A stretch of 64,000 nucleotides of DNA from Mantamonas sphyraenae STR306 (GCA_026936335.1 JAPMXV010000009.1:186001-250000); one strand, 5' to 3'. Shown: positions 1 to 33,300, numbered from the stretch's first letter. Notes: generated from the sequence alone by a model not told the origin. Numbers and translations are program-made.

Positions 1-948
1 CTGCTGGCGCTGCTGAAGAAGCGGGATGCAAGCAACGAGCTGATCAGCGGATGCCTGGCGGAGGTGGCTCTGTTGTCGCAGAAGCCGAGCGAACACAACA
101 ACCTGGTGGACAAGGGCACGGTGAACGTGCTGCTGCGCCTGCTGAAGGACGAGGTGAACAAGGAGGGGGACCGGGACGAGCTGAAGCTGCTGTCCGTGGG
201 CAAGGCCCTTGTAAATATCTCTGCGGGCAACGCAGAGGCCAAGTCGGTGATCATTGCGCAGGACGCAACGGTGTTTATCCGCAAGTTGCTGAACTACAGC
301 AACGAGGAGCTTGCACGCACCTACGCAGCGCTGATCAAAAACTGCACCAACACGCCCGAGCATCGCAAGAAGATTGCGGAACAGGGGGCCATCTCCGACC
401 TGGTGGGTCTGCTCAAGACGACCTCCCTTCCCAGTGGCCGCTCGTCGGACCCGGTGATCATTGCGGCCGCGAGTGCACTGTGGAACCTGGCCACCACCGA
501 GTCCAACGTGCGCTTCATTGTCATTGCCGACGGCCTCACACGCCTGGTGTCGCTGGTGCGGCGCAACAAGAACGAAGAGGTGCTGGCCAAGTGCTGCGGT
601 GCCCTCATGGTGTTGTGCAAACCCAACAACAAGGAGGAGTTTCAGGAGTACAAGCTCAAGCGCTCCATTGGATGCCCCACGCCCCCTGGCGTGGTGGACG
701 ACGAGTATCGCGAGGTGGAGGACACCGGTGTGGTGGGCACCCTGTGTGCCCTGTTGCGCAAGAGCAAGAACGTGACCCTGCTGCGCAACATTTGCGGTCT
801 GTTTGCCTTTTTGTGCTCCGACCCAGACATTCAGAAGCTCATGAAGCAGAACCAGATTGCAGAGGGTCTCGAGTACTGCAAACGTGCGCGTGAGAAGCGC
901 ATGGAGGCCTTTGTCGGCCAGATTGAGCTGCGTTTGGGTTTGGATTGA
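1..948 (+). CDS. Armadillo-repeat protein, 5'-truncated by the window edge
   Basis: Frame is open from base 1. ARM-like repeats: 'LVDKGTVNVLLRLL', 'IAEQGAISDLVGLL', 'AAASALWNLA', 'CCGALMVLC'. Confidence 0.75.
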   Translation: MLALLKKRDASNELISGCLAEVALLSQKPSEHNNLVDKGTVNVLLRLLKDEVNKEGDRDELKLLSVGKALVNISAGNAEAKSVIIAQDATVFIRKLLNYSNEELARTYAALIKNCTNTPEHRKKIAEQGAISDLVGLLKTTSLPSGRSSDPVIIAAASALWNLATTESNVRFIVIADGLTRLVSLVRRNKNEEVLAKCCGALMVLCKPNNKEEFQEYKLKRSIGCPTPPGVVDDEYREVEDTGVVGTLCALLRKSKNVTLLRNICGLFAFLCSDPDIQKLMKQNQIAEGLEYCKRAREKRMEAFVGQIELRLGLD

Positions 949-997
949 AAAATGGAATGCACCATCCAAGCCACTGCCTTTGTTTTCCTTCGTTGGC

Positions 998-1996
998 TCA
1001 CAACTTGGCCTGCATCCATGAGGAAAACTCGTCGGGTGAGGCAACGCCTTCACGTCCATCGTCGTCGTTGAGGGGTGGTCGGTCGAGTTCGTCCCAATGA
1101 TCGATGAGCCAGTATCGGAACCAGGCGACACAGTGACGCACCATGCGTGGGGTCACGCGATGACCGACGCCGTCGTATTCCACCAGCTGCAAACGGCGCT
1201 GGTCGCTGTAAAACACGCGTGCTGCGTCCATAAAGGTGAGGTTGCACACGGTGGGCACCAGGGTGTCCTCCTTGCCCGAGCAGATGAGCAGCGGCCGGTC
1301 TGCAAACGCACTGGCGTGGAAGATGGGATCGTGCTTGCGAATGAGTTGAAGCAGAGGCTGTGAGTAAGGCGCAAACGGAGGCTCGTCCACCTCTTCCAGG
1401 CCTCCGCCGCCGCTGGTGTTGTTGCCATTCGACGACGATGCAACCACACTGCTGTCGTTGCTCCCGCCTGTGCCCACACTGCCTGACTTGTCCTTGTCCT
1501 TGCCTGTGCCCTTGCCCCCCTTGTTCTTCTTCTTGGTACGTCTGCCGCCGCTGCCGCCGTTGTTCATCATCCGCTCCTGCTTGGCCGTCGCTTCCAGCTG
1601 CTTCTTCTCCAGCCTCCTGCGGAAATTGTACACGCGGATCTCCATCATGAGTTTGTAGTTGGCCGATCCGATGATGGGACAGGCGACGGCGACGCGCGAG
1701 TCCATGGCCATGCTGAGGAAGGCAATGTGGCCGCCCAGCGACACTCCCGTCACACCCACCCGCTCCAGAGACAGGTTGGGGAAGCGGCAGGGCAGAAAGT
1801 CCAGCACTGTGCTGATGTCCATTGCCGTACCCAGCTGCATGCTGTACATGTCACTCTCGTGCAGCGGGTTGCGGTTCCAACCGTGGTTTGCGCTGTGGGT
1901 TCCCGCGAAATCAAAGCAGCAGCAGCGTCCCGTGTTTTTTTGTGGTGGTGGGCCTGGTCAGCCTCGTTGCCAGACACCATTTTCCAGGTGAACGGG

Positions 1997-2039
<43 letters not shown>

Positions 2040-2377
2040 CACACATGCCCATCCAAGAAGACCTACATTTCATCCACCAGGCGTTCGCCGTGGTTTCGCG
2101 CTTCGATGGCAATGGCCACCATGTCGTTGCGAGCCAGAAGCAAACAGATGGGCACGATTTTGGCCACCGTCTGCAGGCGGCCATGCGACACAAACACCAC
2201 TGGTTTGGGTGCCGTTGCGTTGCCACTGCTCTTGGTCCGTTTGGAGGGACCCCCCCTGGTGTCGTCGTCTTGCTTCGGGTGCAGTGCTAGCGACTCTTGT
2301 TCCGCACCAAAGATCCGGATTTTGATGCCGGCCACACACACGACCACAGCCTGAGTACGCTGCAGTGATTGAGACAT
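998..2377 (-). CDS. Alpha/beta-hydrolase (esterase) with C-terminal PTS1 (-AKL); 2 exons
   Basis: Nucleophile motif GVSLGG, Asp in 'EDTLVP', His in 'GVGH'. Intron 2066-1893 (GTAGGT...CACAG) joins 'RNHGERLVDE' to 'IANHGWN' in frame. Confidence 0.85.
1998..2034. repeat. (CA)n microsatellite in an intron
   Basis: Perfect CA run. Similar runs lie at ~4174-4220, ~15150-15180, ~35280-35293 and ~58588-58615, all intronic. Confidence 0.95.
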
Positions 2378-2479
2378 GGCCAGCCGTAGCTTGCAAAGAG
2401 TAGATTCGAGGGAGGGGGAGGGGTGGAGGAAGGAGGGGTGGAGGAGGAAGGGGAGAGGTGTGGGGGTTTTGGATTGGCA

Positions 2480-4169
2480 TCACTCGCGCACAGTGTCCAT
2501 CAATGCATGCTCGTGGACAATTTCGCCTCCAACGACAGTCATGAGGACGTGTGTGCGATCGACCGTCTCTGGATCGACAGTGAGGATGTCCCTGTCGAGG
2601 ATGACAAAGTCACCCAGGAAGCCTGGACGGAGGGAACCCTTCTTGTGGTCGTCAAAGGCAGCGTAGGCGGCATCGACCGTGTGTGCTTTGAGGGCTTCCT
2701 CCACGGAAATGGCTTGGCGGGGCACAAAGTGGATGGGAGGGCGTGCGGATTCGTCGCTGCTGCTGCTCTGTTGTTCGGCCTGTACGAGACGATTGGCAGC
2801 TGCGTGGATGCTCTGCATGGGCACCGGTTCGGCCACAAACCAATCCGAGCCAAAGGCAAGTCGCACGCCTGCGTCGAGCAAGTCGCGATGGACAAATTGG
2901 CGCGCGATGCGGTTGCCGATGCTGCGGTGCAACCAACGGCCGTCGTCGAGCATGTGCGAAGGTTGCATGCTGGCAATGATTTGTTCCTGGGCCATGCGTT
3001 GTACGTCGCTCTCTGACACCGCCTGTGCGTGTTCGATGCGCATGCGACGGTCACGTGGGCCGTTGCGTGCACGCACACGTGCGGCAATGTCCAACAAATC
3101 GGACACCGCCTGGTCGCCGAGTGCATGTATGGAAAGGTGCAAACCACGACGATCGGCATCCAGTGCCAATTGGGTCATGTCTGCCTTGGTGATGATGCGC
3201 AGGCCGTGGTTGTTGGCAGGGCCGTCCTCGTAGGCCTCCTTCATCAGGGCGGACCGTGAGCCAAAGGAGCCGTCCATGAAGCCCTTGAGATTGCCAATCT
3301 TGAACCAATCGTCGTCCAGCAGCTCTGGTCGTTCCGACTTGACTTGCAGCAGTTTGGGCCACTCGGTGATGGGCATGGCATAGTAGATGCGCACACGAAG
3401 GGTGCCCTCCTCACGTGCGTGGTTGAACACGTCAAAGTCGTCGTCGGCGGCAATGTCCAATGCCATGTGGTGCACCGAGGTGACACCGTTTTCGTGCAGG
3501 TACCGTGTGCCACGCGCCAACGCACGCTGGTTCGACTTCATACTGTGTGCCGGCAGGTGGTTGCTCACCAATTGGATGGCATTGTCACGCAACAATCCCG
3601 TGGGATGACCCTGTTCGTCGCGTACAATGACCCCTCCGTCGGGTTCCACCGTGTCCCGTGTGACCCCAGCCACCTGCAACGCACGCGTGTTGGCCAAACA
3701 CGTGTGCCCATCCATCTGACACAGAAACGCAGGCGAATCCATTGTCACCGGATCGATCCATGTGCGCGTGGGCAACTCACCACCCCACGACTCTGGGTTG
3801 AAACTGCCTCCCAGGATCCAATGATCACCGACTCGTTCAGCCACGCACGGTGCTGCAACACCCACGTGCGCAACACACGTTGGAATTCTGGCGGTGTGCG
3901 CACGTGTCGAAGGTCCACCTCATGCAAACGGTGCGACGCAAGCAGCAGGTGCACGTGGGAATCCACAAACCCGGGTGTCACCAGCCAGCCCTTGCCCGCA
4001 CCGTCAATCACCTGAGTGTGTTCCCCAACAAACGCCTCTGCTTCTGCATTGCTTCCCACTGCCAACAACCGTTGCTTCAGGTCGCAGCATGCCAACGCTT
4101 CGGCGTACGGTGCCTCTGTGTTTCCTGTCCAGATCCGGGTGTTCTTGACCACCACCGTTGCCACCCTGT

Positions 4170-24377: not shown

Positions 24378-26159
24378 TCATCCGTACTTGGAGACAAAGT
24401 CGAGGATAGATGCCTGAAGATCGGTGTAGGGCGGATACAGGAGACCAAAGAGGTCAAAGTAGGTGGGCTTCTTCATGATGGCCTTCTTGTGAGAAAAGTC
24501 GTCGATGCTCCACTTGCCATGGTAGGCACCCATGCCGGACTCACCGACGCCACCAAAGGGCAATGCGTTGTTGCCATTCTGCACCACGCAGTGGTTGACA
24601 ACAAGGGAGCCGCTGGTGGTGCGGTCAATGATGGTGTCCTGCACCTTGGTGTTGGTGGAGAAGACATACAGGGCCAAGGGCTTGTCATGGTCGTTGATGT
24701 ACTCAATGGCCCAGTCCAGATCGTCGTAGGGCACAATGGGCAGAATGGGCCCAAACAGCTCGTCCTTCATGGCCTCGCTCTCGTCCGGGTTCTCCACAAG
24801 CACCAATGTCGGTTCCACATACTTGTCCTCCACCGAGTAGCCACCTCCATGCACAATTGTCCCGGCCGCCTCTTCTGCATCCATGATCTTGGCCAGTCGG
24901 CGTGTGTGCCGCTCGTTGATGATCCTCGAGTACGACTTGCTCTCCTTGGGTTTGCTGGTGTAATACTCCTCCAACTTGGCCACCAGTCCCTCAATCACCT
25001 CATCCACGTGGGATCGATGCACCAAAAGGTAATCTGGCGCCACACACGTCTGCCCACAGTTCTGAAACTTGCCCCACGCAATGCGGTTCATCATCGTGTC
25101 AAAGTGCGGCATGTCTTTGTCCACAATGCATGGACTCTTGCCTCCCAGCTCCAATGACACCGGCGTCAGGTGCTTGGCGGCTGCCTGCATCACAATGCGT
25201 CCCACAAACCCGTTGCCAGTGTAGAAAATCTTGTCCCATTTGCACTCCAGCAACGCCGTCGTTTCTGCCACCGCTCCTTCCACCACCTGCACCACCTCTG
25301 GATCCAAATACTCCTCCACCAGCTTGGCAAGTGCAGCAGACGACGCAGGCGCCACCTCGCTCGGCTTCACCAGCACGCAGTTGCCTGCAGCCAGCGCCCC
25401 AATCAGCGGCACCAGCGTCAACTGGATGGGATAGTTCCACGGCGCAATCACCAGCACCACCCCAAGCGGCTCTGGACGCACATAGCACGTCGACGGCATC
25501 AGAGGCAGCTGCAGCATGGATGTGTGTGCGTGGGTATGGTGAGCGTGTGCGTGTGTGTGCGTGTTTTCGTGGCACGTGTCAGCCTTTGAGAGAGGGGAAT
25601 TTGTGGCCGTTGTTGACACGCAAAAAGGGTCACTGGCCGTAGCCGTCCAGGTGGCTGGGTGGGACAGTGTACAACATAGCATAGTAACGTAACGTACGGG
25701 AGTAGCTACACTCTCGGGTTCCATGAGCTTCTTCAGGTTGCCCATGTAGAACTTGAGCTCCTCGAGGATGGGGAACTTGGCGACAATCTGCTCGGCTCGG
25801 CACTTGCCCAGGTCCGCCTCCAAGGCAGCATTGAGGTTGTCTGCCTCCGCTGTGTAGCCTCGCATCAAGTCCTTCAGCATGCGCATGCGTGAGTCGTAGT
25901 CCAGCGTGCGTCCTGTCTTGAAGGTGGCCCGCAGCTTCTCCACTCGGTCGGTGTAGTCGATGCGGCGACGGGCTCGCTTCGGCGTCCCGCTGCTGCTGGA
26001 CGAGGAAGAAGATGACGACGATGACGAAGATGACGACGATGACGACGATGAAGAGGTGGTCTCTTCAACGTCAATCTTGTCCTCCTGCGTCTCCTCCTGG
26101 GGCTCCTCGGTCTGCTTTCGCTTGCGTGTCGTTCGGGAAGTGCGTCGCTTGGCCGGCAT
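24378..26159 (-). CDS. Aldehyde dehydrogenase, ALDH3/fatty-aldehyde type; in-frame intron 25697-25509
   Basis: 'EPLGVVLVIAPWNYP', 'KPSE', 'LELGGKSP', catalytic 'GQTCVAPDY', 'ELFGPILP', 'PFGGVGESG'. Confidence 0.93.
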   Translation of the reverse strand: MPAKRRTSRTTRKRKQTEEPQEETQEDKIDVEETTSSSSSSSSSSSSSSSSSSSSSSGTPKRARRRIDYTDRVEKLRATFKTGRTLDYDSRMRMLKDLMRGYTAEADNLNAALEADLGKCRAEQIVAKFPILEELKFYMGNLKKLMEPESVATPVRYVTMLCCTLSHPATWTATASDPFCVSTTATNSPLSKADTCHENTHTHAHAHHTHAHTSMLQLPLMPSTCYVRPEPLGVVLVIAPWNYPIQLTLVPLIGALAAGNCVLVKPSEVAPASSAALAKLVEEYLDPEVVQVVEGAVAETTALLECKWDKIFYTGNGFVGRIVMQAAAKHLTPVSLELGGKSPCIVDKDMPHFDTMMNRIAWGKFQNCGQTCVAPDYLLVHRSHVDEVIEGLVAKLEEYYTSKPKESKSYSRIINERHTRRLAKIMDAEEAAGTIVHGGGYSVEDKYVEPTLVLVENPDESEAMKDELFGPILPIVPYDDLDWAIEYINDHDKPLALYVFSTNTKVQDTIIDRTTSGSLVVNHCVVQNGNNALPFGGVGESGMGAYHGKWSIDDFSHKKAIMKKPTYFDLFGLLYPPYTDLQASILDFVSKYG

Positions 26160-26407
26160 TTCTCGGTTTGGGGTGGCCCGCCATGGGCATCGTCCATCAC
26201 ATGGACATTGAGATTGGGAGGATGGGCGTTATGGGAAGGGTGGTGGTGAGTCAAAAGAGATTGGCATGGTGCGCTTGAAGAGCGATTCAAAACAACTCTG
26301 AAATCAAACACAGTGTTCGGGGAGGGTGTGTTGGATGCGGGCGAATGAAACTCCCTCTTTTCATTTTTCAGTGCATTGCAGGAGCAGGGCACTTCTCTGC
26401 CACCGCA

Positions 26408-29400
26408 TCACGTGAGGCGCTTGAAGCCAGTCTGGGCGACAGGACCCAGGAGGTGGTCGCGGACAGTGCCAGCTTTGACATAGCCAGCCAGCTCTGCAAA
26501 GACCTCGTGGCATGCGTCGATGTACTTGTTGATGTGTTCCTCCTTGTGTGCAAACGACGAGTAGAACGAGGCGCCCGCAAGGAAGCCGCGGTCCAGCATG
26601 AGTTGCGTAAACAGAGTGCGCACAGCCAAGGCGTCATCGACCTCAAAGTCAAAGTGAGCCAGCGGTGGGATGCCACTGGTGTGGATGCTCAGACCAGCTT
26701 TGTCTGCAGCCGCCTGCCAGCCGTCCAGCACCATTTGGCCAATCTTCATCATGTGGTCGCCCACGTTCTCATCGCGGTACTTCTTGATGGTGGCCAGCGC
26801 TGCGGTGAGACCGATGCCCTCGGTCCAGTACGTGGAGCTGATGAATGTGCTCTGAGACGACTGCATGATCGCCTCCTTGCCAATGATGGCCGACATTGGG
26901 TAGCCGTTGCTCATGCCCTTGGCAAACACAGCCATGTCCGGGTTGACGCCAAACTTCAGGTGCACGCCGCCCGCATTCATGCGGAACGCAGAGGTGATTT
27001 CGTCAAAGATCAGCACTGCACCCGTCGAGTCTGCAAGCTTGCGCACTCCCTCCAGAAACCCTTCCTCGGGCATCATGTTGCGCACAGGCTCCATCACAAT
27101 CGCCGCCAGCTGGTCGCCGTGCTTATCCACAATCTCCTGCAATTGGTCCAGTTTGTTGTAGTAAAACGGCAGCGCAGTGCCAGCCAGGCCCTGCGGCACG
27201 CCCGTGGGATCCAGCCCGCCAATCAGATGGCCAGCAAGCGCATCCTGTGCGTCTGCCCCCTCGCTGCTGCTGCTGCTGTTGCTGCTGCTGTTGGCCTGTT
27301 CAGGAACCACCTCGGCCAGGTTGGCGCTGAGGTACCAGTCATGCCAGCCGTGGTAGCCGCAAAACGCGACAATGGGCCGCTTTGTGTGTGCGCGCGCGAT
27401 GCGCACAGCAATGGACATTGCCTCGCCGCCAGTTTTGCAGAAGCGTGCCATGTCCGCCCACGGGTGCAGCTCACAAAGCAGGTCGGCCAGGTCGACCTCC
27501 TCGCGGCGGTTCAGCGTGGCCATGGAGCCCAAGTCGACCATGTGATGCACCGCCCGGTTCACGTCCGGGTCGTTGTGACCCAGCGTGCACGCCCCGATGC
27601 CGTTGTACGTCATCTCCAGGTACTTGTTGCCGTCCAAGTCGTACACGTAGGGTCCGTTCGTCTTGAGGTAGTACGCAGGCCAGTTGTCCGGCAGGAACAT
27701 TTCTGGGCGCTTGCTGAGCAGCTGCGTGCCTCCGGGCAGCCGGTTCTTCTTCGCGTACGCATACAGCTTCTGACCGGTTTCGCTCTTGCTCAGCATGCCC
27801 TTGCTGTACCATTCGGACCCTTCGACGAGGTGTGCGTTGATGGCACGCACCTCTGGGTTCTCTTTCAGGTACGCAATGATGGCCGCCTTGTCAAAGTATG
27901 GATCGGCGTCGTACAGGGCGTCAAACAAGGCCGTGATCAGCTCCAAGTCCTTGGGGTAGTCCAGCGTCCATCGCTGGTCACCCTGCGGGTCGTCGTGGTC
28001 GTTGAGCACCTCCACCTTGAAGTTGCCCGACAGGCGAGTGTACAGCGTCACATGCTCTCGGTTGTCCTTGCCCTCGGCCTCCAACCAGGCGCGGCGCAGG
28101 CTGTCGTACGTGAACGCCTCGATGTCCAGCCCGTCGGGCGACGTGCGTCCCACGGCCTCCACGTTGGAGCAGTAGTCCAGCGAGGCGTGCGTGAGCAGGT
28201 GGGTGACCACCGTGTCAATTTCCACCGGATCCATCACGGGACAGTCGGCCGTGATGCGCACCACCACATCGGGCTGCATCAGGCGTGCGCACTGGTAGAA
28301 GCGGTCCAGCACGTCGTCCAACGAGCCGCGCGACACGGCCACGTCATTCTTGGAGCACCACTGTGCAATGTGGTCGTCGGCTGCGTCTGTGGACGTGGCC
28401 ACCACCACATCAGTCACTGTGGCTGCTCGTTGCACACGCTCCACCACATGCTGCAACACAGGCTTGCCGTGCAGATCCATCAGACTCTTGCCTGGCAGGC
28501 GGCTGGAGCTCATGCGAGCCTGGATGATGGCCACCACACGCTCGCGGGAAAAGAACGCCGCCACCTTGTTCACTGCGGCAATGACATCCTGCACATCCGC
28601 GTCCTCCATCAGCGGGAACACTGGGAGGGTGATGATGCGCTCGTAGGCATCCTCGGCCACGGGAAGCATGCCTTCACGCGTGCCGTGGTTCTCCTTGTAG
28701 TACGGGTGCAGATGGATGGGCATGTAGTGCAGGTTCACCCCGATGCCCTCCTCGCGCAGCGCACGGAAAAACGTGTCGCGATCACAGGTCAACCTCTCGT
28801 GATTGACCTTGATCAGAAAGATGTGCCATGCGCCCTCAAGGTTGCGCTGGCCGGGCCACACGCTGTCTACGTAGGGGCAGTCGGCAAATGCGGCCTCGTA
28901 CATGGCTGTGATTTCGCGGCGGCGCGCAATGAACGCGTCGAGCTTGGCCATCTGGGTGATACCCATGGCGCAATGGACGTCGGACAGGCGGTAGTTGAAG
29001 CCCAGCTTGACCATCTCGTAGTAGTAGGTGCCCTTCTGTTCACGGGCCTTGTAGTCCACACTGATCCCGTGCGTGCGAAACACACGCATGCTCTCTGCGT
29101 ACTCCTCCGAGTTGGTCACCACCATGCCTCCTTCGCACGTGGTCACCGTTTTGACCGGGTGGAACGAGAAGCAGGTCATGTCTGCAAACGAGCCCACCTT
29201 GGCGCCTTGATAGGTTGCCCCGATAGCGTGCGCGGCATCCTCGATCAGCACCAGGTTGTGCTCCTTGGCAATCGCAGAGATCTGCTCATAGTCGCATGGC
29301 GTGCCACACAGGTCCACCGAGACGATGGCCTTTGTGTGCGGCGTGATCTTTGCGCGCAGATCTTCGGGATCCATGTTCAGGGTTTCTGGCAGCAGGTCAC

Positions 29401-29788
29401 AGAAGACAGGTGTGCCACCACAGTACACGACAGCGTTGGCGGAAGCCACAAAGCTGATGCCCGAGACAATGACCTCGTCGCCTGGTCCCACGCCCGCTGC
29501 GTGGACGGCCAGGTGGAGGGCAGCGGTGCCCGAGTTGACAGCGATGCCAAACTTGGCTCCGCTGTACTCGGCCACACACTGCTCAAACTCGGCCACCTTG
29601 GGGCCTGTGGTGAGAAAGTCGGACTTCATGGTGTCGACCACGGCCTGGATGTCGGCCTCGTCGATGCTCTGCTTTCCGTACGGGAGCATGGCGTCGCGTA
29701 CGGGGGCGCCTCCGTTGAGAGCCAAATGCGACCTGGCCACAGACACGTTGCTGCTGCTGCTCTGAGTCTCGGATGCGGAACTGGACAT
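26408..29788 (-). CDS. Intronless triple fusion: PseC/DegT-family sugar aminotransferase + SpsF-like cytidylyltransferase + class III (GSA-aminomutase-like) aminotransferase
   Basis: Domain 1 (~29730-28560): 'LPYGKQSIDEADIQAV..SDFLTTGPKV', 'IEDAAHAIGA', 'SFHPVKTVTTCEGG', 'GFNYRLSD'. Domain 2 (~28545-27850): 'IIQARMSSSRLPGK', 'DVLDRFY', 'VRITADCP', 'REHVT', 'RWTLDYPKD'. Domain 3 (~27790-26408): 'GGTQLLSKRPEMF', 'CGYHGWHDW', 'IFDEITSAFR', 'FAKGMSNGYP'. Confidence 0.9.
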   Translation of the reverse strand: MSSSASETQSSSSNVSVARSHLALNGGAPVRDAMLPYGKQSIDEADIQAVVDTMKSDFLTTGPKVAEFEQCVAEYSGAKFGIAVNSGTAALHLAVHAAGVGPGDEVIVSGISFVASANAVVYCGGTPVFCDLLPETLNMDPEDLRAKITPHTKAIVSVDLCGTPCDYEQISAIAKEHNLVLIEDAAHAIGATYQGAKVGSFADMTCFSFHPVKTVTTCEGGMVVTNSEEYAESMRVFRTHGISVDYKAREQKGTYYYEMVKLGFNYRLSDVHCAMGITQMAKLDAFIARRREITAMYEAAFADCPYVDSVWPGQRNLEGAWHIFLIKVNHERLTCDRDTFFRALREEGIGVNLHYMPIHLHPYYKENHGTREGMLPVAEDAYERIITLPVFPLMEDADVQDVIAAVNKVAAFFSRERVVAIIQARMSSSRLPGKSLMDLHGKPVLQHVVERVQRAATVTDVVVATSTDAADDHIAQWCSKNDVAVSRGSLDDVLDRFYQCARLMQPDVVVRITADCPVMDPVEIDTVVTHLLTHASLDYCSNVEAVGRTSPDGLDIEAFTYDSLRRAWLEAEGKDNREHVTLYTRLSGNFKVEVLNDHDDPQGDQRWTLDYPKDLELITALFDALYDADPYFDKAAIIAYLKENPEVRAINAHLVEGSEWYSKGMLSKSETGQKLYAYAKKNRLPGGTQLLSKRPEMFLPDNWPAYYLKTNGPYVYDLDGNKYLEMTYNGIGACTLGHNDPDVNRAVHHMVDLGSMATLNRREEVDLADLLCELHPWADMARFCKTGGEAMSIAVRIARAHTKRPIVAFCGYHGWHDWYLSANLAEVVPEQANSSSNSSSSSEGADAQDALAGHLIGGLDPTGVPQGLAGTALPFYYNKLDQLQEIVDKHGDQLAAIVMEPVRNMMPEEGFLEGVRKLADSTGAVLIFDEITSAFRMNAGGVHLKFGVNPDMAVFAKGMSNGYPMSAIIGKEAIMQSSQSTFISSTYWTEGIGLTAALATIKKYRDENVGDHMMKIGQMVLDGWQAAADKAGLSIHTSGIPPLAHFDFEVDDALAVRTLFTQLMLDRGFLAGASFYSSFAHKEEHINKYIDACHEVFAELAGYVKAGTVRDHLLGPVAQTGFKRLT

Positions 29789-30313
29789 TGTGAGGGTTGG
29801 GTTGTGTTGATGCCTAAACGAGACGGTAGGATACCGTGCAGGGGACGTTGCGTGTGTGAGCGAAGTGGCAGAGCAGGGAAAAGAACGTCGGGGACGCGAG
29901 GAAAAAGAAACGGAAATCGGGGAAGCCGGAACCCCGAGCAACGGGTGCTTGGGGTCGGTCAGGACCCAGGGAAGAGGCCCATGCGAGTGGTACACGAGCT
30001 GACAGGACGCCCAATCCCTGCGCAGAGACAGTCGGCGGACGTTTGGCGGTGTAGCTGGATTGGAAGGACATGCCAAGGGGCGCAGACAGATGTGCGTGGC
30101 CGGGAACTCGGCGAAATCTGGACGGGAGAATCTGAAGCGCCGTCGGAGAAGGAACAGGGCCGTGGGGAAGGGGGGCGGATGTGCATGCAACACAGTGGCG
30201 CAACAAGGGAGGATGGAAGGGAATCTGGAGCCGGGATGTGGATTGTACACACACTCACTCACAGTCTCGCAGAAAGAGTTGGCAAAGGCAGCGCATCTGC
30301 TGTCTTGCACACT

Positions 30314-33300
30314 TTACAGAGTTGGCAAGGTGACGTCCATGGCACAGAGACGCTCGAGCACCTCTGGGTGAAGATGGTCGGTGGAGGAGGCATCGAGGAG
30401 CTGGGAGAGGGTGGTGGCCGTTCGCATGGAGTGGGAAAGCTGAACCAGGTCGGCGTCCGGGTCGGTGTAGTGGAGCAGATGGACGAGCAAAACACGAGAG
30501 GCACGTGCACACAGAGTGTCTATGAGGGTGGCCACTTGCCATTGGGAAAGGGGAGTGTCTTTCGAAGGAACGAGGAGGTTGCGTGCCAGGTGGTGCAACG
30601 CTGCGCGGTAGAGGACAGTGCTGTGGCCTCGACTGAGCAAAATGTGTTTGGTTGGGTCGCACAACTGGTCGAGGAGCAGTTGGATGAGGGAAAGGTCAGA
30701 CTCGACGGGTTCAAACAGGGCCATCTTGTCAAAGGGCAGCCGGTCCATGATTTGACCAAAATAGCGCATCATCTCCACTGTGTGGTTCCACATGGTGGTG
30801 CGGTACGCCAGGGGCATATCCGTTCGCAGAAAGAAGCTGAGGGCACGACACATGGCTGCGTGGCCATACGATTCGCTGACAAACTCGTCGAGCACATCCA
30901 TAAGCAATTGTCGCATGTTCACGTGCACCTGTGTGACAGCAATGTCCAATGGCATCGCCTTTGACCCCAGCATGTCGATCCACTCTTCCAGTGCCTCTTC
31001 CACGTCCTCGTCGCGGTAGTAGTCCGCGCCAAGCTGAAAGACACGCAGCATGTCGACAAGCTGGCGCGACGGTGGCACCATGGACGCATACAATGCGTCG
31101 TGGTGGAGATGATGGAGCATCAGCCGGATGGCAGAAGAGACTTCGAGGGTGGTGGGCAACACCTGCGGGCTGCCTGGCACGTGGCCTGCACCGACGTCAA
31201 AGTGGCACACGAGGGGCAACAGCAACCAGTCGCTCAGCAGGGGCATTTGTGTAAACAGAGAAGGACGCGGCGCCGGCAGGAAAGCGCCTGTGTTGAGGCG
31301 GAGGCTGTCTCGCAGGGTGTTGTGCTGCGAGTGGACCAGAGCCTGGCGGGTGAAGGCAAGGGAGGGGTAAAAGTCGAAAAGGTGGGCACGGAGCATGTCT
31401 GCGGTGTCTTGGGACATGCCCAGGTGGTTGGTGAACAAGTGTAGGTCCAGCACAAAGACATCGAGGAGATCGACAGCCAGGTACTCGTCGCCCGGAAGGA
31501 GCACCGAGAGCAGAACGCAGCCAATGTCCATGAGGGCAATGTCGTGGTCGTGCCGTGTGGGCAGATGGGCCACCGACTTGAGCAGATGGTACGCCGTGTG
31601 TGCAAAGGGCCGGTTGAGGAAGCGACGTTGGATGTCCTGGGCGGTGCGTTCGACCACGGGGCCACGTTGTGCCAAGTGAGCGCACAGAGTGGTGGCACAG
31701 TGAACCATGCGAGATGCAGTGGCATCATCGTCGTCCCACTGGTCGACAAGAGACGGGTTGGCACGGAGGATGTGGTGAAGTACGCGTGCAAAGCCCGCCA
31801 GACTGTTGGCCATCGGCACACGCGTGTCAAGCTGCCGCTCCGTGTCTTTGTCTGCGTCGAAACAAAGCATGAGCTGGGTGGGTGCCATGCCGTGTTGCGG
31901 TGCTGCGTGCGTGTCGACGATTCCACCTGCGCGTTCCACGTCATCCAGCCATCCCAGCGACCACAGGGGACGAAGCACCGAGTCGTTGAACTGCTGCATT
32001 TCGGTGACAATCGACTCGTTGTCCAGTAGCACGTCCCGGTGCAGGACTATGCGTTGGAAGTACGAGGCCACAAAGTGCAATGCGGCGCCAGCCAGACGAT
32101 GCAGCAGCACCGGGAGGGTTTGCAGCTGTTCTCCTCCTCCTTCTCCTCCTCTCCTCCTCCTTGCTGCTGCTGCTGTGGCAATGTATCCACAAGAGTGGCC
32201 AACAGAGTGTGGGGCAGTTCGTACATGGCCGAGACCACGGACCAATGAATCCCTCCACGCGGACGAGACAACGCCTCAGCCTCGGTGTCGTCGTCACCCT
32301 GTGCAGACTTGGCCTTGTTGGCTGATGAAGGTGCCACTTTGGCCAGCATCTGTGCCGCTTGGTCCTCTTGGCTGGCCGTCTTGTCGTCGCCATCTGTGGC
32401 TGCGCCGCTTTTTTGTGCGTCGACGCTTGTCAAGTGGCACATCTGTTCAAACAGAGCCAGCAGTTCACAGATGAGGTGGACGTGTGCGCGGTGAGCGTGA
32501 TGGGTGTCATCATCGCAGGTGGTGAGATCGTCCTGGGCCTGCAACCAGGTGGAGACCCAGCCAAAGTGGCTGAGCAGGTCTGGGTACAGCAAGGCAAAGG
32601 CGTCTGCGTTGAGGCCGTAGCTGAGGCAGGCTCGCCAGGCACGGATGGCCTGAACGCTCATGGCGTGGTGCAAGGCCTGCTTCCACCCTTGGCTTGCGTC
32701 GTCCCAATCGCCCGGCTCGTATGACGCAGCCATGACTATGTACATCTTGGCACTCTCGATGTGTCCAGCCTTGACGAGGGTGGCGGCACACTTGAGGGAG
32801 CTCTGGCAGAGCACGCGAACGATGCGCATGGCAATGGGGTTGGGCAGGCCGTACACCTGCGCCGCGTGTGCCTGGCTGCCCAGCGGGAAGTTGACCTGCA
32901 CAAAATCGTTCACAATGGTGTCCACCAGCCGTGGGGTGTCCGCCACGGCCTGTGCCGCCACGCCGCTGTGCCGTGCACACTGCAACACAATCTCCAGGAT
33001 GTGCTGTGCGGCGTCGGCCAGCCGCAACACCTCCAAAATGTAGCGCAGCCTGTGCAACATGTTTGTTTTCAACATGCACTGCACCAAATCCACCTCCATC
33101 AGTTGCAACTCGTCAAAGTTGCTCAGCGAACGATCGGCGACTGCCTGCGCCACCGCATCCCCATTCTCCACCATGCCCTGCAGACGCAACAATTCGGCTG
33201 TCTCTGCGTGCGACACGTCGTCAAACTGGCCTGCAAGCGGAGCCAACGGCAGTGGGGCAAGGCCACGATCGAACCCAGAAGCAAGGGACTCGAAACAGGC

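Follow-up and report, generated by a model that had tools for sequence, protein, structure and literature searches.

A nuclear PseC-SpsF-class III aminotransferase fusion gene in Mantamonas sphyraenae and the putative pseudaminic acid pathway to which it may belong

A three-domain fusion gene between eukaryotic neighbours

The window examined here is a 64,000-nucleotide stretch of the Mantamonas sphyraenae STR306 genome (GCA_026936335.1, JAPMXV010000009.1:186001-250000). On its minus strand lies an intronless coding sequence (26408-29788) for a protein of 1126 amino acids, followed by a stop codon, in which a PseC aminotransferase, an SpsF-type cytidylyltransferase and a class III aminotransferase (ATIII) are joined in that order. 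The frame is open from 30310 down to 26408. Its first ATG is at 29788 and its stop codon at 26408-26410, as given by the open reading frame (ORF) listing and the translation, and the gene model also rests on alignment with the sister species Mantamonas plastica. The initial annotation, made from the sequence alone, had described a single intronless ORF of about 1126 amino acids between eukaryotic genes, with three complete domains and their catalytic motifs. This description holds throughout: there is no intron, the flanks are an aldehyde dehydrogenase and an RPAP1 gene, and Pfam and NCBIfam recognize all three domains, each with its quoted motif.

The PseC domain (residues 34-409; 28562-29689, minus strand) scores 474.8 bits against NCBIfam TIGR03588, above the equivalog cutoff of 423.5, and covers model positions 1-379 of 380; this is the model of UDP-4-amino-4,6-dideoxy-N-acetyl-beta-L-altrosamine transaminase. 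Residues 41-406 match Pfam DegT_DnrJ_EryC1 (PF01041, E 1.6e-130), and the domain is 54-59% identical to bacterial PseC. Its scores against the ArnB, LegC, WecE and DesI models all lie far under the respective cutoffs. The pyridoxal phosphate (PLP) lysine of the DegT family, K213 in the motif SFHPVK, is present and is also kept in M. plastica.

After a linker of no more than about six residues comes the SpsF-type domain (residues ~418-647; 27848-28537, minus strand). Residues 419-587 match CTP_transf_3 (PF02348) with E 5e-28 and 98.8 bits against a cutoff of 22.6, and the structure deposited as 'Cytidylyltransferase' (PDB 6oew) matches the whole domain with E 7.5e-26. The N-terminal nucleotide-binding motif reads QARMSSSRLPGK (residues 423-434). 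In an alignment of 31 sequences the residues S14, R16, K20 and D101, in the region's own numbering, are invariant.

The C-terminal ATIII domain (residues 666-1125; 26414-27793, minus strand) resembles glutamate-1-semialdehyde aminomutase in fold and sequence. It matches Aminotran_3 (PF00202) over residues 704-1031 (E 5.5e-41, 141 bits against a cutoff of 30.5) and the glutamate-1-semialdehyde aminomutase structure 5i92 with E 7e-43. A true HemL glutamate-1-semialdehyde 2,1-aminomutase was nevertheless ruled out by scores under the equivalog cutoffs, namely 189 bits against 527.3 for HemL TIGR00713 and 257 against 486 for NF004856 (PRK06209). The PLP lysine K957, in the motif FAKG, and about 100 further columns are invariant across 31 orthologues, and the Mantamonas domains keep every invariant column. 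Class III relatives with solved structures include aminoglycoside C-6' aminotransferases and the neamine transaminase NeoN, with 6'-aldehydes of sugars as substrates, and the aminopentol aminotransferase 6hbs, which acts on an amine beside a terminal methyl.

The best database match to the fusion comes from M. plastica, for which the comparison set consisted of Trinity transcripts in EukProt. The longest product (P0123, 1113 amino acids) aligns with the fusion from residue 11 to the last, over 1117 residues, with 74% identity; identity per domain is 71-80% in all three. The sole sizeable gap is a serine-rich insert of 17 residues inside ATIII (residues ~828-844; 27257-27307, minus strand), which is specific to M. 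sphyraenae. In M. plastica the fusion is thus transcribed as one ORF with its three parts equally conserved, and since that species has it end to end, the fusion is older than the split of the two Mantamonas species. Beyond the genus it was not seen: a word-indexed search of 5.8 billion proteins found no other protein spanning all three domains, and an exhaustive phmmer search of 1.84 billion representatives found no triple fusion outside Mantamonas. In neither protein library, then, is the fusion widespread; the initial annotation had counted a widespread and characterised fusion against its proposal.

Is the gene Mantamonas's own? Its domains are 50-59% identical to prokaryotic proteins, as they might be if the ORF of a co-cultured bacterium had been misjoined to eukaryotic DNA in a contaminated or chimeric assembly. 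We regard this explanation as extremely improbable. The gene lies on a long-read contig, within a few hundred bases of its two neighbours on the same strand: downstream an aldehyde dehydrogenase gene in eukaryotic context (24378-26159; Aldedh PF00171, E 8.9e-87) and upstream the eukaryote-specific RPAP1, RNA polymerase II-associated protein 1 (30314-32245; PF25766 TPR_RPAP1, E 6e-15). Its GC content at third codon positions (GC3) is 0.80, next to 0.63-0.76 for the host genes checked, whereas the closest prokaryotic loci have 41-53% GC overall, and no prokaryotic protein exceeds about 59% identity to the fusion domains. One pathway partner, the PseI gene described below, carries a spliceosomal intron, and the partner genes are spread over five contigs. 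The M. plastica orthologue, together with a GC3 that is host-like and unlike the prokaryotic loci, is what makes contamination or chimerism very unlikely. Given its eukaryotic linkage, host-like composition, sister-species orthologue and nesting within a prokaryotic clade (see below), the fusion is a genuine M. sphyraenae nuclear gene of prokaryotic origin.

The Mantamonas genome paper reports most of the contigs over which the pathway genes are spread as telomere-capped at both ends, and describes a decontamination step that dropped predicted proteins whose best GTDB match had at least 50% identity and at least 50% coverage (PMC10492846). Such a rule might have removed bacterial-derived genes like the fusion from the released proteomes. 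The paper's passages on bacteria treat them only as contaminants, and those on horizontal transfer speak of it only as a screen of phylogenomic markers (PMC10492846).

On the plus strand, positions 26345-30964 hold an ORF of 1539 amino acids antisense to the fusion gene. Its translation is of low complexity and rich in V, A, R, H and G; most likely the high GC3 of the fusion gene gives rise to this ORF, and it does not itself encode a protein.

The prokaryotic SpsF/ATIII module and the origin of the fusion

Residues 415-1126 of the fusion have full-length homologues among two-domain SpsF/ATIII proteins of about 690 amino acids, which are very common in genomes and metagenomes and show 45-59% identity. 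Counting one genome per species, the module is present in at least 599 species of Bacteria and Archaea; carriers among the matches listed include Gammaproteobacteria, marine Synechococcus, Prochlorococcus, SAR11, SAR116, CPR, DPANN and Methanoregula, as well as relatives of Marinobacter and Neptuniibacter. Their proteins are labelled 'glutamate-1-semialdehyde 2,1-aminomutase', 'glutamate-1-semialdehyde aminotransferase/spore coat polysaccharide biosynthesis protein SpsF' or 'aminotransferase class III-fold pyridoxal phosphate-dependent enzyme', and in the literature we found no experimental study on the function of the family. Like these proteins, the Mantamonas protein aligns over the full length and has the nucleotide-binding motif, the PLP lysine and an oxidoreductase partner. 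It differs from them in that PseC is fused in front, the oxidoreductase gene lies on another contig, and the gene is nuclear with the codon bias of its host.

Eighty loci were compared by tblastn with Mantamonas and bacterial reference proteins. They exhibit a stereotyped operon order, PseB - PseC - (GNAT) - oxidoreductase - SpsF - ATIII - PseG(-GNAT) - PseI, where GNAT denotes an acetyltransferase of that family. Counts were taken from the 47 loci in which both SpsF and ATIII are present and the flanks extend for 3.5 kb or more in each direction. An oxidoreductase is present in 44 of the 47, of the aldo-keto-reductase (AKR) type in 36 and of the GFO type in eight; PseC is found in 40, PseB in 39, PseI in 34 and a PseG-like gene in 31. 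The species count and this survey agree with the earlier statement that SpsF-like and class III aminotransferase genes occur adjacent or fused in bacterial surface-glycan clusters.

A maximum-likelihood tree built on the ATIII domain places both Mantamonas sequences within a prokaryotic clade whose members have the GFO type without AKR and come from Bipolaricaulota (L026), Binatia (L048), Sumerlaeota (L057), Syntrophales (L049) and Methanoregula (L068 and L076); here SpsF and ATIII lie side by side as two distinct ORFs. The Mantamonas fusion keeps the operon order, with the oxidoreductase relocated to another contig. Moreover, when PseC, the oxidoreductase and ATIII of Mantamonas are compared by tblastn, their best matches share a few loci, namely L026, L048, L049 and L057. 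These data fit one operon-sized acquisition, which would have been followed by fusion of PseC, SpsF and ATIII and dispersal of the other genes. The proposal of the initial annotation that a bacterial operon segment was acquired and fused thus gains support from the operon order and the shared best-match loci.

In the closest bacterial Pse cluster, that of the Bipolaricaulota locus, genes for a thiolase and a short-chain dehydrogenase lie in addition between those for PseH and PseI (L026 14035-15970). These two genes would suit the synthesis of a 3-hydroxybutyryl N-acyl group.

The ATIII subfamily also exists outside Pse clusters, as its stand-alone orthologues and its fusions to an amidohydrolase indicate. 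Close ATIII orthologues (53-59% identical) with no Pse gene within 10 kb were seen at L033, L037, L051, L060-L062, L064 and L065, and further stand-alone orthologues, again with no Pse gene within 10 kb, at L073, L078, L082, L084, L091, L094 and L096. Three ATIII proteins of the representative library are fused to Amidohydro_2 (P0375, P0494 and P0378).

A second eukaryotic carrier of the module was found on a metagenome contig of 8219 bases from the European Nucleotide Archive (L013, k141_356472). Its gene at 295-3405 encodes a GFO-SpsF-ATIII fusion of 1036 amino acids (P0064), and we assign the contig to a eukaryote because genes for PI4K, RabGAP-TBC and a split galactokinase adjoin it. P0064 is sister to Mantamonas in the ATIII tree with an SH-aLRT of 94, on a long branch, so that the placement is not secure. 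The separate Mantamonas oxidoreductase has its best match in the GFO domain of P0064 (42% identity, 276 bits, against 268 for the best bacterium). The sequences thus link P0064 loosely to Mantamonas, and possibly reflect one or two eukaryotic acquisitions. The idea that the GFO-SpsF-ATIII fusion is a eukaryotic invention was rejected, as the same architecture is present in a tight bacterial operon (P0392).

Partner genes elsewhere in the Mantamonas genome

The assembly searched for pathway genes comprises 25,061,354 bases in 78 contigs, with about 59% GC. The initial annotation had suggested a pseudaminic- or legionaminic-like sugar pathway, for which it proposed looking for a PseB dehydratase, a PseH acetyltransferase, a PseG hydrolase, a NeuB/PseI-type synthase, a partner oxidoreductase, a CMP-sugar transporter and a transferase, and it had named the lack of PseB or of the synthase, together with a failure to detect a nonulosonate, as grounds for abandoning the idea. 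Both are present at equivalog level, and the oxidoreductase, nucleotide-sugar transporters and a candidate transferase were also found. PseB, PseI and the oxidoreductase are intact ORFs.

PseB (G000:C56:328860-329837) scores 510-512 bits against an equivalog cutoff of 407.75. Its ORF runs about 165 codons 5' of the conserved domain (L002 2479-3045, minus strand), in a stretch that is rich in Pro, Cys and Arg and has no domain match. This extension is probably a 5' leader read in frame, and translation more likely begins at an internal Met that precedes the domain by about 25 residues.

PseI lies on contig C49 and scores 439.8 bits against a cutoff of 340.25, while it remains under the cutoff of the NeuB/NnaB model; no second NeuB-family gene was found in the genome. 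The gene holds an in-frame GT..AG intron of 213 nucleotides (G000:C49:456179-456391; L001 1289-1501, minus strand), equal to 71 codons, which was called from alignment to the M. plastica protein and from the GT..AG boundaries in the DNA. In the PseI protein encoded by M. plastica transcripts (P0247) the 71 codons are missing, and their removal would restore the junction PGPD-SS-FSLEPQEF. PseI is also retained and transcribed in M. plastica. Its C-terminal tail of about 130 residues (L001 604-1011, minus strand) is 43% identical between the two Mantamonas species. AlphaFold predicts a GNAT topology for the tail (pLDDT 81), and the best 50 Foldseek matches are all GNAT acetyltransferases, so the model supports a GNAT assignment at the level of fold only. 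A further acetyltransferase candidate is encoded on contig C20: a protein of 226 amino acids with an Acetyltransf_3 GNAT domain, which matches the PseH profile of the clusters with an hhalign probability of 98% and has intact W-x-N-D and RGKGVG motifs.

The oxidoreductase, a GFO/IDH/MocA protein of 343 amino acids on contig C31, matches a profile of the oxidoreductases from the closest prokaryotic clusters with E 1e-108. An AKR partner was sought with one bacterial AKR query, which had no match in the Mantamonas genome. This blank is explained by the closest prokaryotic clade, which has the GFO type without AKR, and the AKR was dropped as a candidate in favour of the GFO-type partner.

At least five SLC35A-type nucleotide-sugar transporters are encoded in the genome, together with a single GT29 sialyltransferase-like gene (G000:C40:31227-31880, 101 bits; L104, ORF 1453-3462, minus strand). 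The genome contains no match to CTP_transf_3 (PF02348) apart from the SpsF domain of the fusion, and searches of it found no NANS/CMAS-type or CMP-Kdo synthetase-like genes, no NeuC/GNE and no Maf/MptE-type flagellin nonulosonate transferase. Of the two sugar types first suggested, the pseudaminic one is retained, as PseB, PseC and PseI all pass their cutoffs. A legionaminic pathway was rejected: scores against the LegB and LegC models are far under cutoff, and NeuC/LegG was not found in the genome.

A putative pathway and its alternatives

We favour, with moderate confidence, the interpretation that the fusion is a trifunctional protein of a variant pseudaminic acid (Pse) pathway, derived from an acquired operon whose genes were then fused or dispersed. 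PseB would convert UDP-GlcNAc to the 4-keto-6-deoxy sugar, the N-terminal PseC domain would aminate this product at C4, and a GNAT, with the C20 protein and the PseI tail as candidates, would N-acetylate it. A hydrolase that was not found would release the free sugar from UDP, PseI would condense it with phosphoenolpyruvate to the nonulosonate, and the SpsF-type domain would activate the latter with CTP. ATIII and the C31 oxidoreductase would most likely turn a hydroxyl of the sugar, or of the CMP-sugar, via a keto group into an amine, with C8 favoured. An SLC35A-type transporter would then carry the CMP-sugar to the single GT29 enzyme. As to the history of the genes, an operon of the order PseB-PseC-oxidoreductase-SpsF-ATIII-PseG/H-PseI would have entered, three adjacent or near-adjacent genes would have fused, and the remaining ones would have been scattered to other contigs, one of them gaining an intron.

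For the PseC domain the standard PseC step is the obvious reading, since the domain belongs to the PseC equivalog and the genome also encodes PseB and PseI. With respect to the Helicobacter and Campylobacter pathway (PseB-PseC-PseH-PseG-PseI-PseF), Mantamonas has the same PseB, PseC and PseI equivalogs and the same logic from UDP-GlcNAc to a CMP-nonulosonate. It differs in an SpsF-type enzyme in place of PseF, in a PseG that was not found, in a PseH that is a candidate, in the additional oxidoreductase/ATIII pair and in its eukaryotic host.

Several observations point to the SpsF domain as a CMP-nonulosonate synthetase. It is the only CMP-ulosonate-synthetase-like sequence in the Mantamonas genome. 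Among five bacterial genomes that carry the cluster there are three in which PF02348 matches only a gene of about 260-300 amino acids (134-218 bits), which we take to be KdsB, the SpsF-ATIII protein and, weakly, an ORF of about 455 amino acids (27-34 bits). One bacterial locus with PseB, a GNAT, a PseG-like gene and PseI has as its sole cytidylyltransferase an SpsF-PseC fusion, with neither ATIII nor oxidoreductase. In Caulobacter, FlmC, a cytidylyltransferase-like protein without PseF homology to which we liken the domain by its description, completes a Pse pathway that was rebuilt in E. coli from six enzymes (PMC7591256), and in Bacillus subtilis the loss of spsF leaves the synthesis of legionaminic acid intact but abolishes its transfer (PMC7439481). 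The Mantamonas domain, which is SpsF-like (PF02348/COG1861-like), has in common with the B. subtilis SpsF and with FlmC, the latter possibly of the SpsF type, that it lies in a nonulosonate pathway and is predicted to act in CMP activation; the two differ from it in being stand-alone, with no aminotransferase or oxidoreductase partners. A study of Vibrio and Moritella assigned the same CMP-activating role to an SpsF-AKR fusion (PMC7371886).

ATIII is tied to an oxidoreductase in the genomes: the two co-occur in the 44 loci given above and are fused in nature as GFO-ATIII (P0455), AKR-ATIII (P0429 and P0471) and GFO-SpsF-ATIII (P0064 and P0392). That two unrelated families, AKR and GFO, occupy the same slot points to a generic alcohol/carbonyl redox step. 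Couples of a GFO dehydrogenase and a transaminase turn a sugar hydroxyl into an amine via a keto group in WbpB/WbpE, GnnA/GnnB and NtdC/NtdA. With these systems, and with the aminoglycoside 6'-dehydrogenase/class III transaminase, the Mantamonas pair shares a GFO or AKR enzyme that is coupled or fused to a PLP transaminase; the three C3 systems named use transaminases of the DegT type, not of class III. The only free hydroxyls of Pse are those at C4 and C8, and oxidation at C8 yields a methyl ketone. For these reasons, and by analogy with such couples, extra amination at C8 of Pse or CMP-Pse is our best guess, in line with the possible extra amination that the initial annotation had proposed.

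A number of points weigh against this pathway, and some of them would be expected if it were incomplete or a relic, in which case no nonulosonate is made and the fusion has another role, for example in making only a UDP-4-amino-6-deoxy sugar, or is being lost. PseG was not found in the genome with TIGR03590, with a single PseG-like protein (L012) or with a five-sequence profile. The canonical Pse pathway cannot run without a UDP-sugar hydrolase, and the reconstructed pathway is therefore one obligatory step short. The canonical PseH model TIGR03585 likewise had no match in the genome, which leaves the acetyltransferase of the initial proposal with candidates only, the C20 GNAT and the GNAT-fold tail of PseI. 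The tail itself matched neither Pfam (E up to 10) nor the PseH profile, and it has no recognisable acetyl-CoA-binding motif. Transcription of the M. sphyraenae locus is deduced from the M. plastica transcripts. A relic is, however, rather unlikely in our estimation. The three domains keep all columns that are invariant in the 31-sequence alignment, they are 71-80% identical between the two Mantamonas species, PseI is transcribed in the second of these, and PseB, PseI and the oxidoreductase are intact. The conserved or intact state of all these parts argues for purifying selection on the whole gene set. Recognisable PseG is also lacking near 16 of the 47 prokaryotic loci, and the gap may reflect a non-homologous enzyme, an undetected divergent enzyme or an incomplete pathway.

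Other points against the favoured interpretation concern what the SpsF domain and its partners act on. Against the PseF model TIGR03584 the domain scores 27.4 bits, over the N-terminal 55 positions only, where the cutoff is 205.7; being under this equivalog cutoff it is not classed as PseF but as a functional analogue, and its substrate is assigned by context. The trio of SpsF, ATIII and oxidoreductase could then make a separate CMP- or CDP-activated amino-alcohol or amino-alditol phosphate that decorates the glycan, with Pse activated otherwise or not at all. Fusions of a reductase and a cytidylyltransferase are familiar from CDP-alditol synthesis (TarI/TarJ, Bcs1), and the CDP-ribitol pairs would be the model. 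The same alternative could draw on the 12 loci that have a stand-alone ATIII orthologue and no Pse gene nearby, on the amidohydrolase-ATIII fusions, and on the SpsF-AKR fusions of a Vibrio cluster, for which no class III aminotransferase is mentioned (PMC7371886). We nonetheless consider it unlikely. In most clusters the trio is flanked by PseC on one side and PseG on the other, and a complete Pse cluster with SpsF exists without ATIII or oxidoreductase. SpsF is the only CTP_transf_3 protein of Mantamonas and, leaving aside the presumed KdsB, the only substantial match in three of the five bacterial genomes; the FlmC reconstitution and the spsF genetics favour CMP-nonulosonate activation as well.

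AKR enzymes reduce more often than they oxidise, so the oxidoreductase/ATIII pair may also run in the direction from amine to hydroxyl. In the literature we found no paper giving the function of this pair in any organism, and no triamino nonulosonate is described in the searchable literature. The enzymatic steps are all inferred, as are what the pair acts on and in which direction, the link to GT29 and the product of the favoured Pse-type pathway, CMP-pseudaminic acid, which may bear an extra amino group.

Pseudaminic, legionaminic and acinetaminic acids have been stated to be exclusive to prokaryotes, and a mass-spectrometric survey with animal cells, plants, fungi and algae among its samples detected them in prokaryotes alone (PMC8157484); the initial annotation had likewise regarded diamino-nonulosonates as prokaryotic sugars. 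Our literature search found no report of a pseudaminic pathway in eukaryotes, protists, microalgae or giant viruses. With eukaryotic sialylation (NANS, CMAS, CMP-Sia transporter and GT29) and with algal Kdn synthesis, the Mantamonas gene set has in common a GT29, SLC35A-family transporters, a NeuB-family synthase and a CMP-activating enzyme. It differs from them in that the synthase is of the PseI type and the activator of the SpsF type, both of prokaryotic ancestry, and that NANS/CMAS and GNE/NeuC are missing from the genome. The predicted sugar would be a 5,7-diamino-9-deoxy nonulosonate, as opposed to the Neu5Ac or Kdn of eukaryotic systems. Given that the genome has no NANS/CMAS-type or CMP-Kdo synthetase-like genes, the product of the Pse-type pathway would be the only CMP-ulosonate for GT29, if that enzyme is active; we hypothesize that this pathway supplies it. 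More tentatively, Mantamonas may put an extra-aminated Pse on its own surface glycoconjugates through GT29, in which case the operon would have replaced the ancestral supply of sialic acid while the transferase was kept.

The family of each domain was already known, and so was the abundance of two-domain SpsF-ATIII proteins in prokaryotes. What is new is the PseC-SpsF-ATIII fusion and its nuclear residence in a genome that also encodes PseB, an intron-bearing PseI, the oxidoreductase and GT29. A protist may thus make a sugar class called exclusive to prokaryotes. This free-living member of the CRuMs, a deep branch of the eukaryotes, has nearly all genes of a Pse-type set, on which purifying selection apparently acts, and offers a concrete organism in which eukaryotic synthesis of Pse-class sugars can be tested. 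Its one GT29, with a Pse-type pathway as the only candidate supply of CMP-ulosonate, bears on the evolution of sialylation and on the donor flexibility of GT29 enzymes. The locus is also a clear case of a transferred operon that became a eukaryotic gene set by fusion, dispersal over contigs and intron gain. Finally, the locus points to a module of oxidoreductase, SpsF and class III aminotransferase that is very widespread inside the Pse clusters of prokaryotes. If the more tentative proposal of an extra-aminated Pse is true, this module would constitute an uncharacterised aminated-Pse branch in at least 599 species of Bacteria and Archaea.

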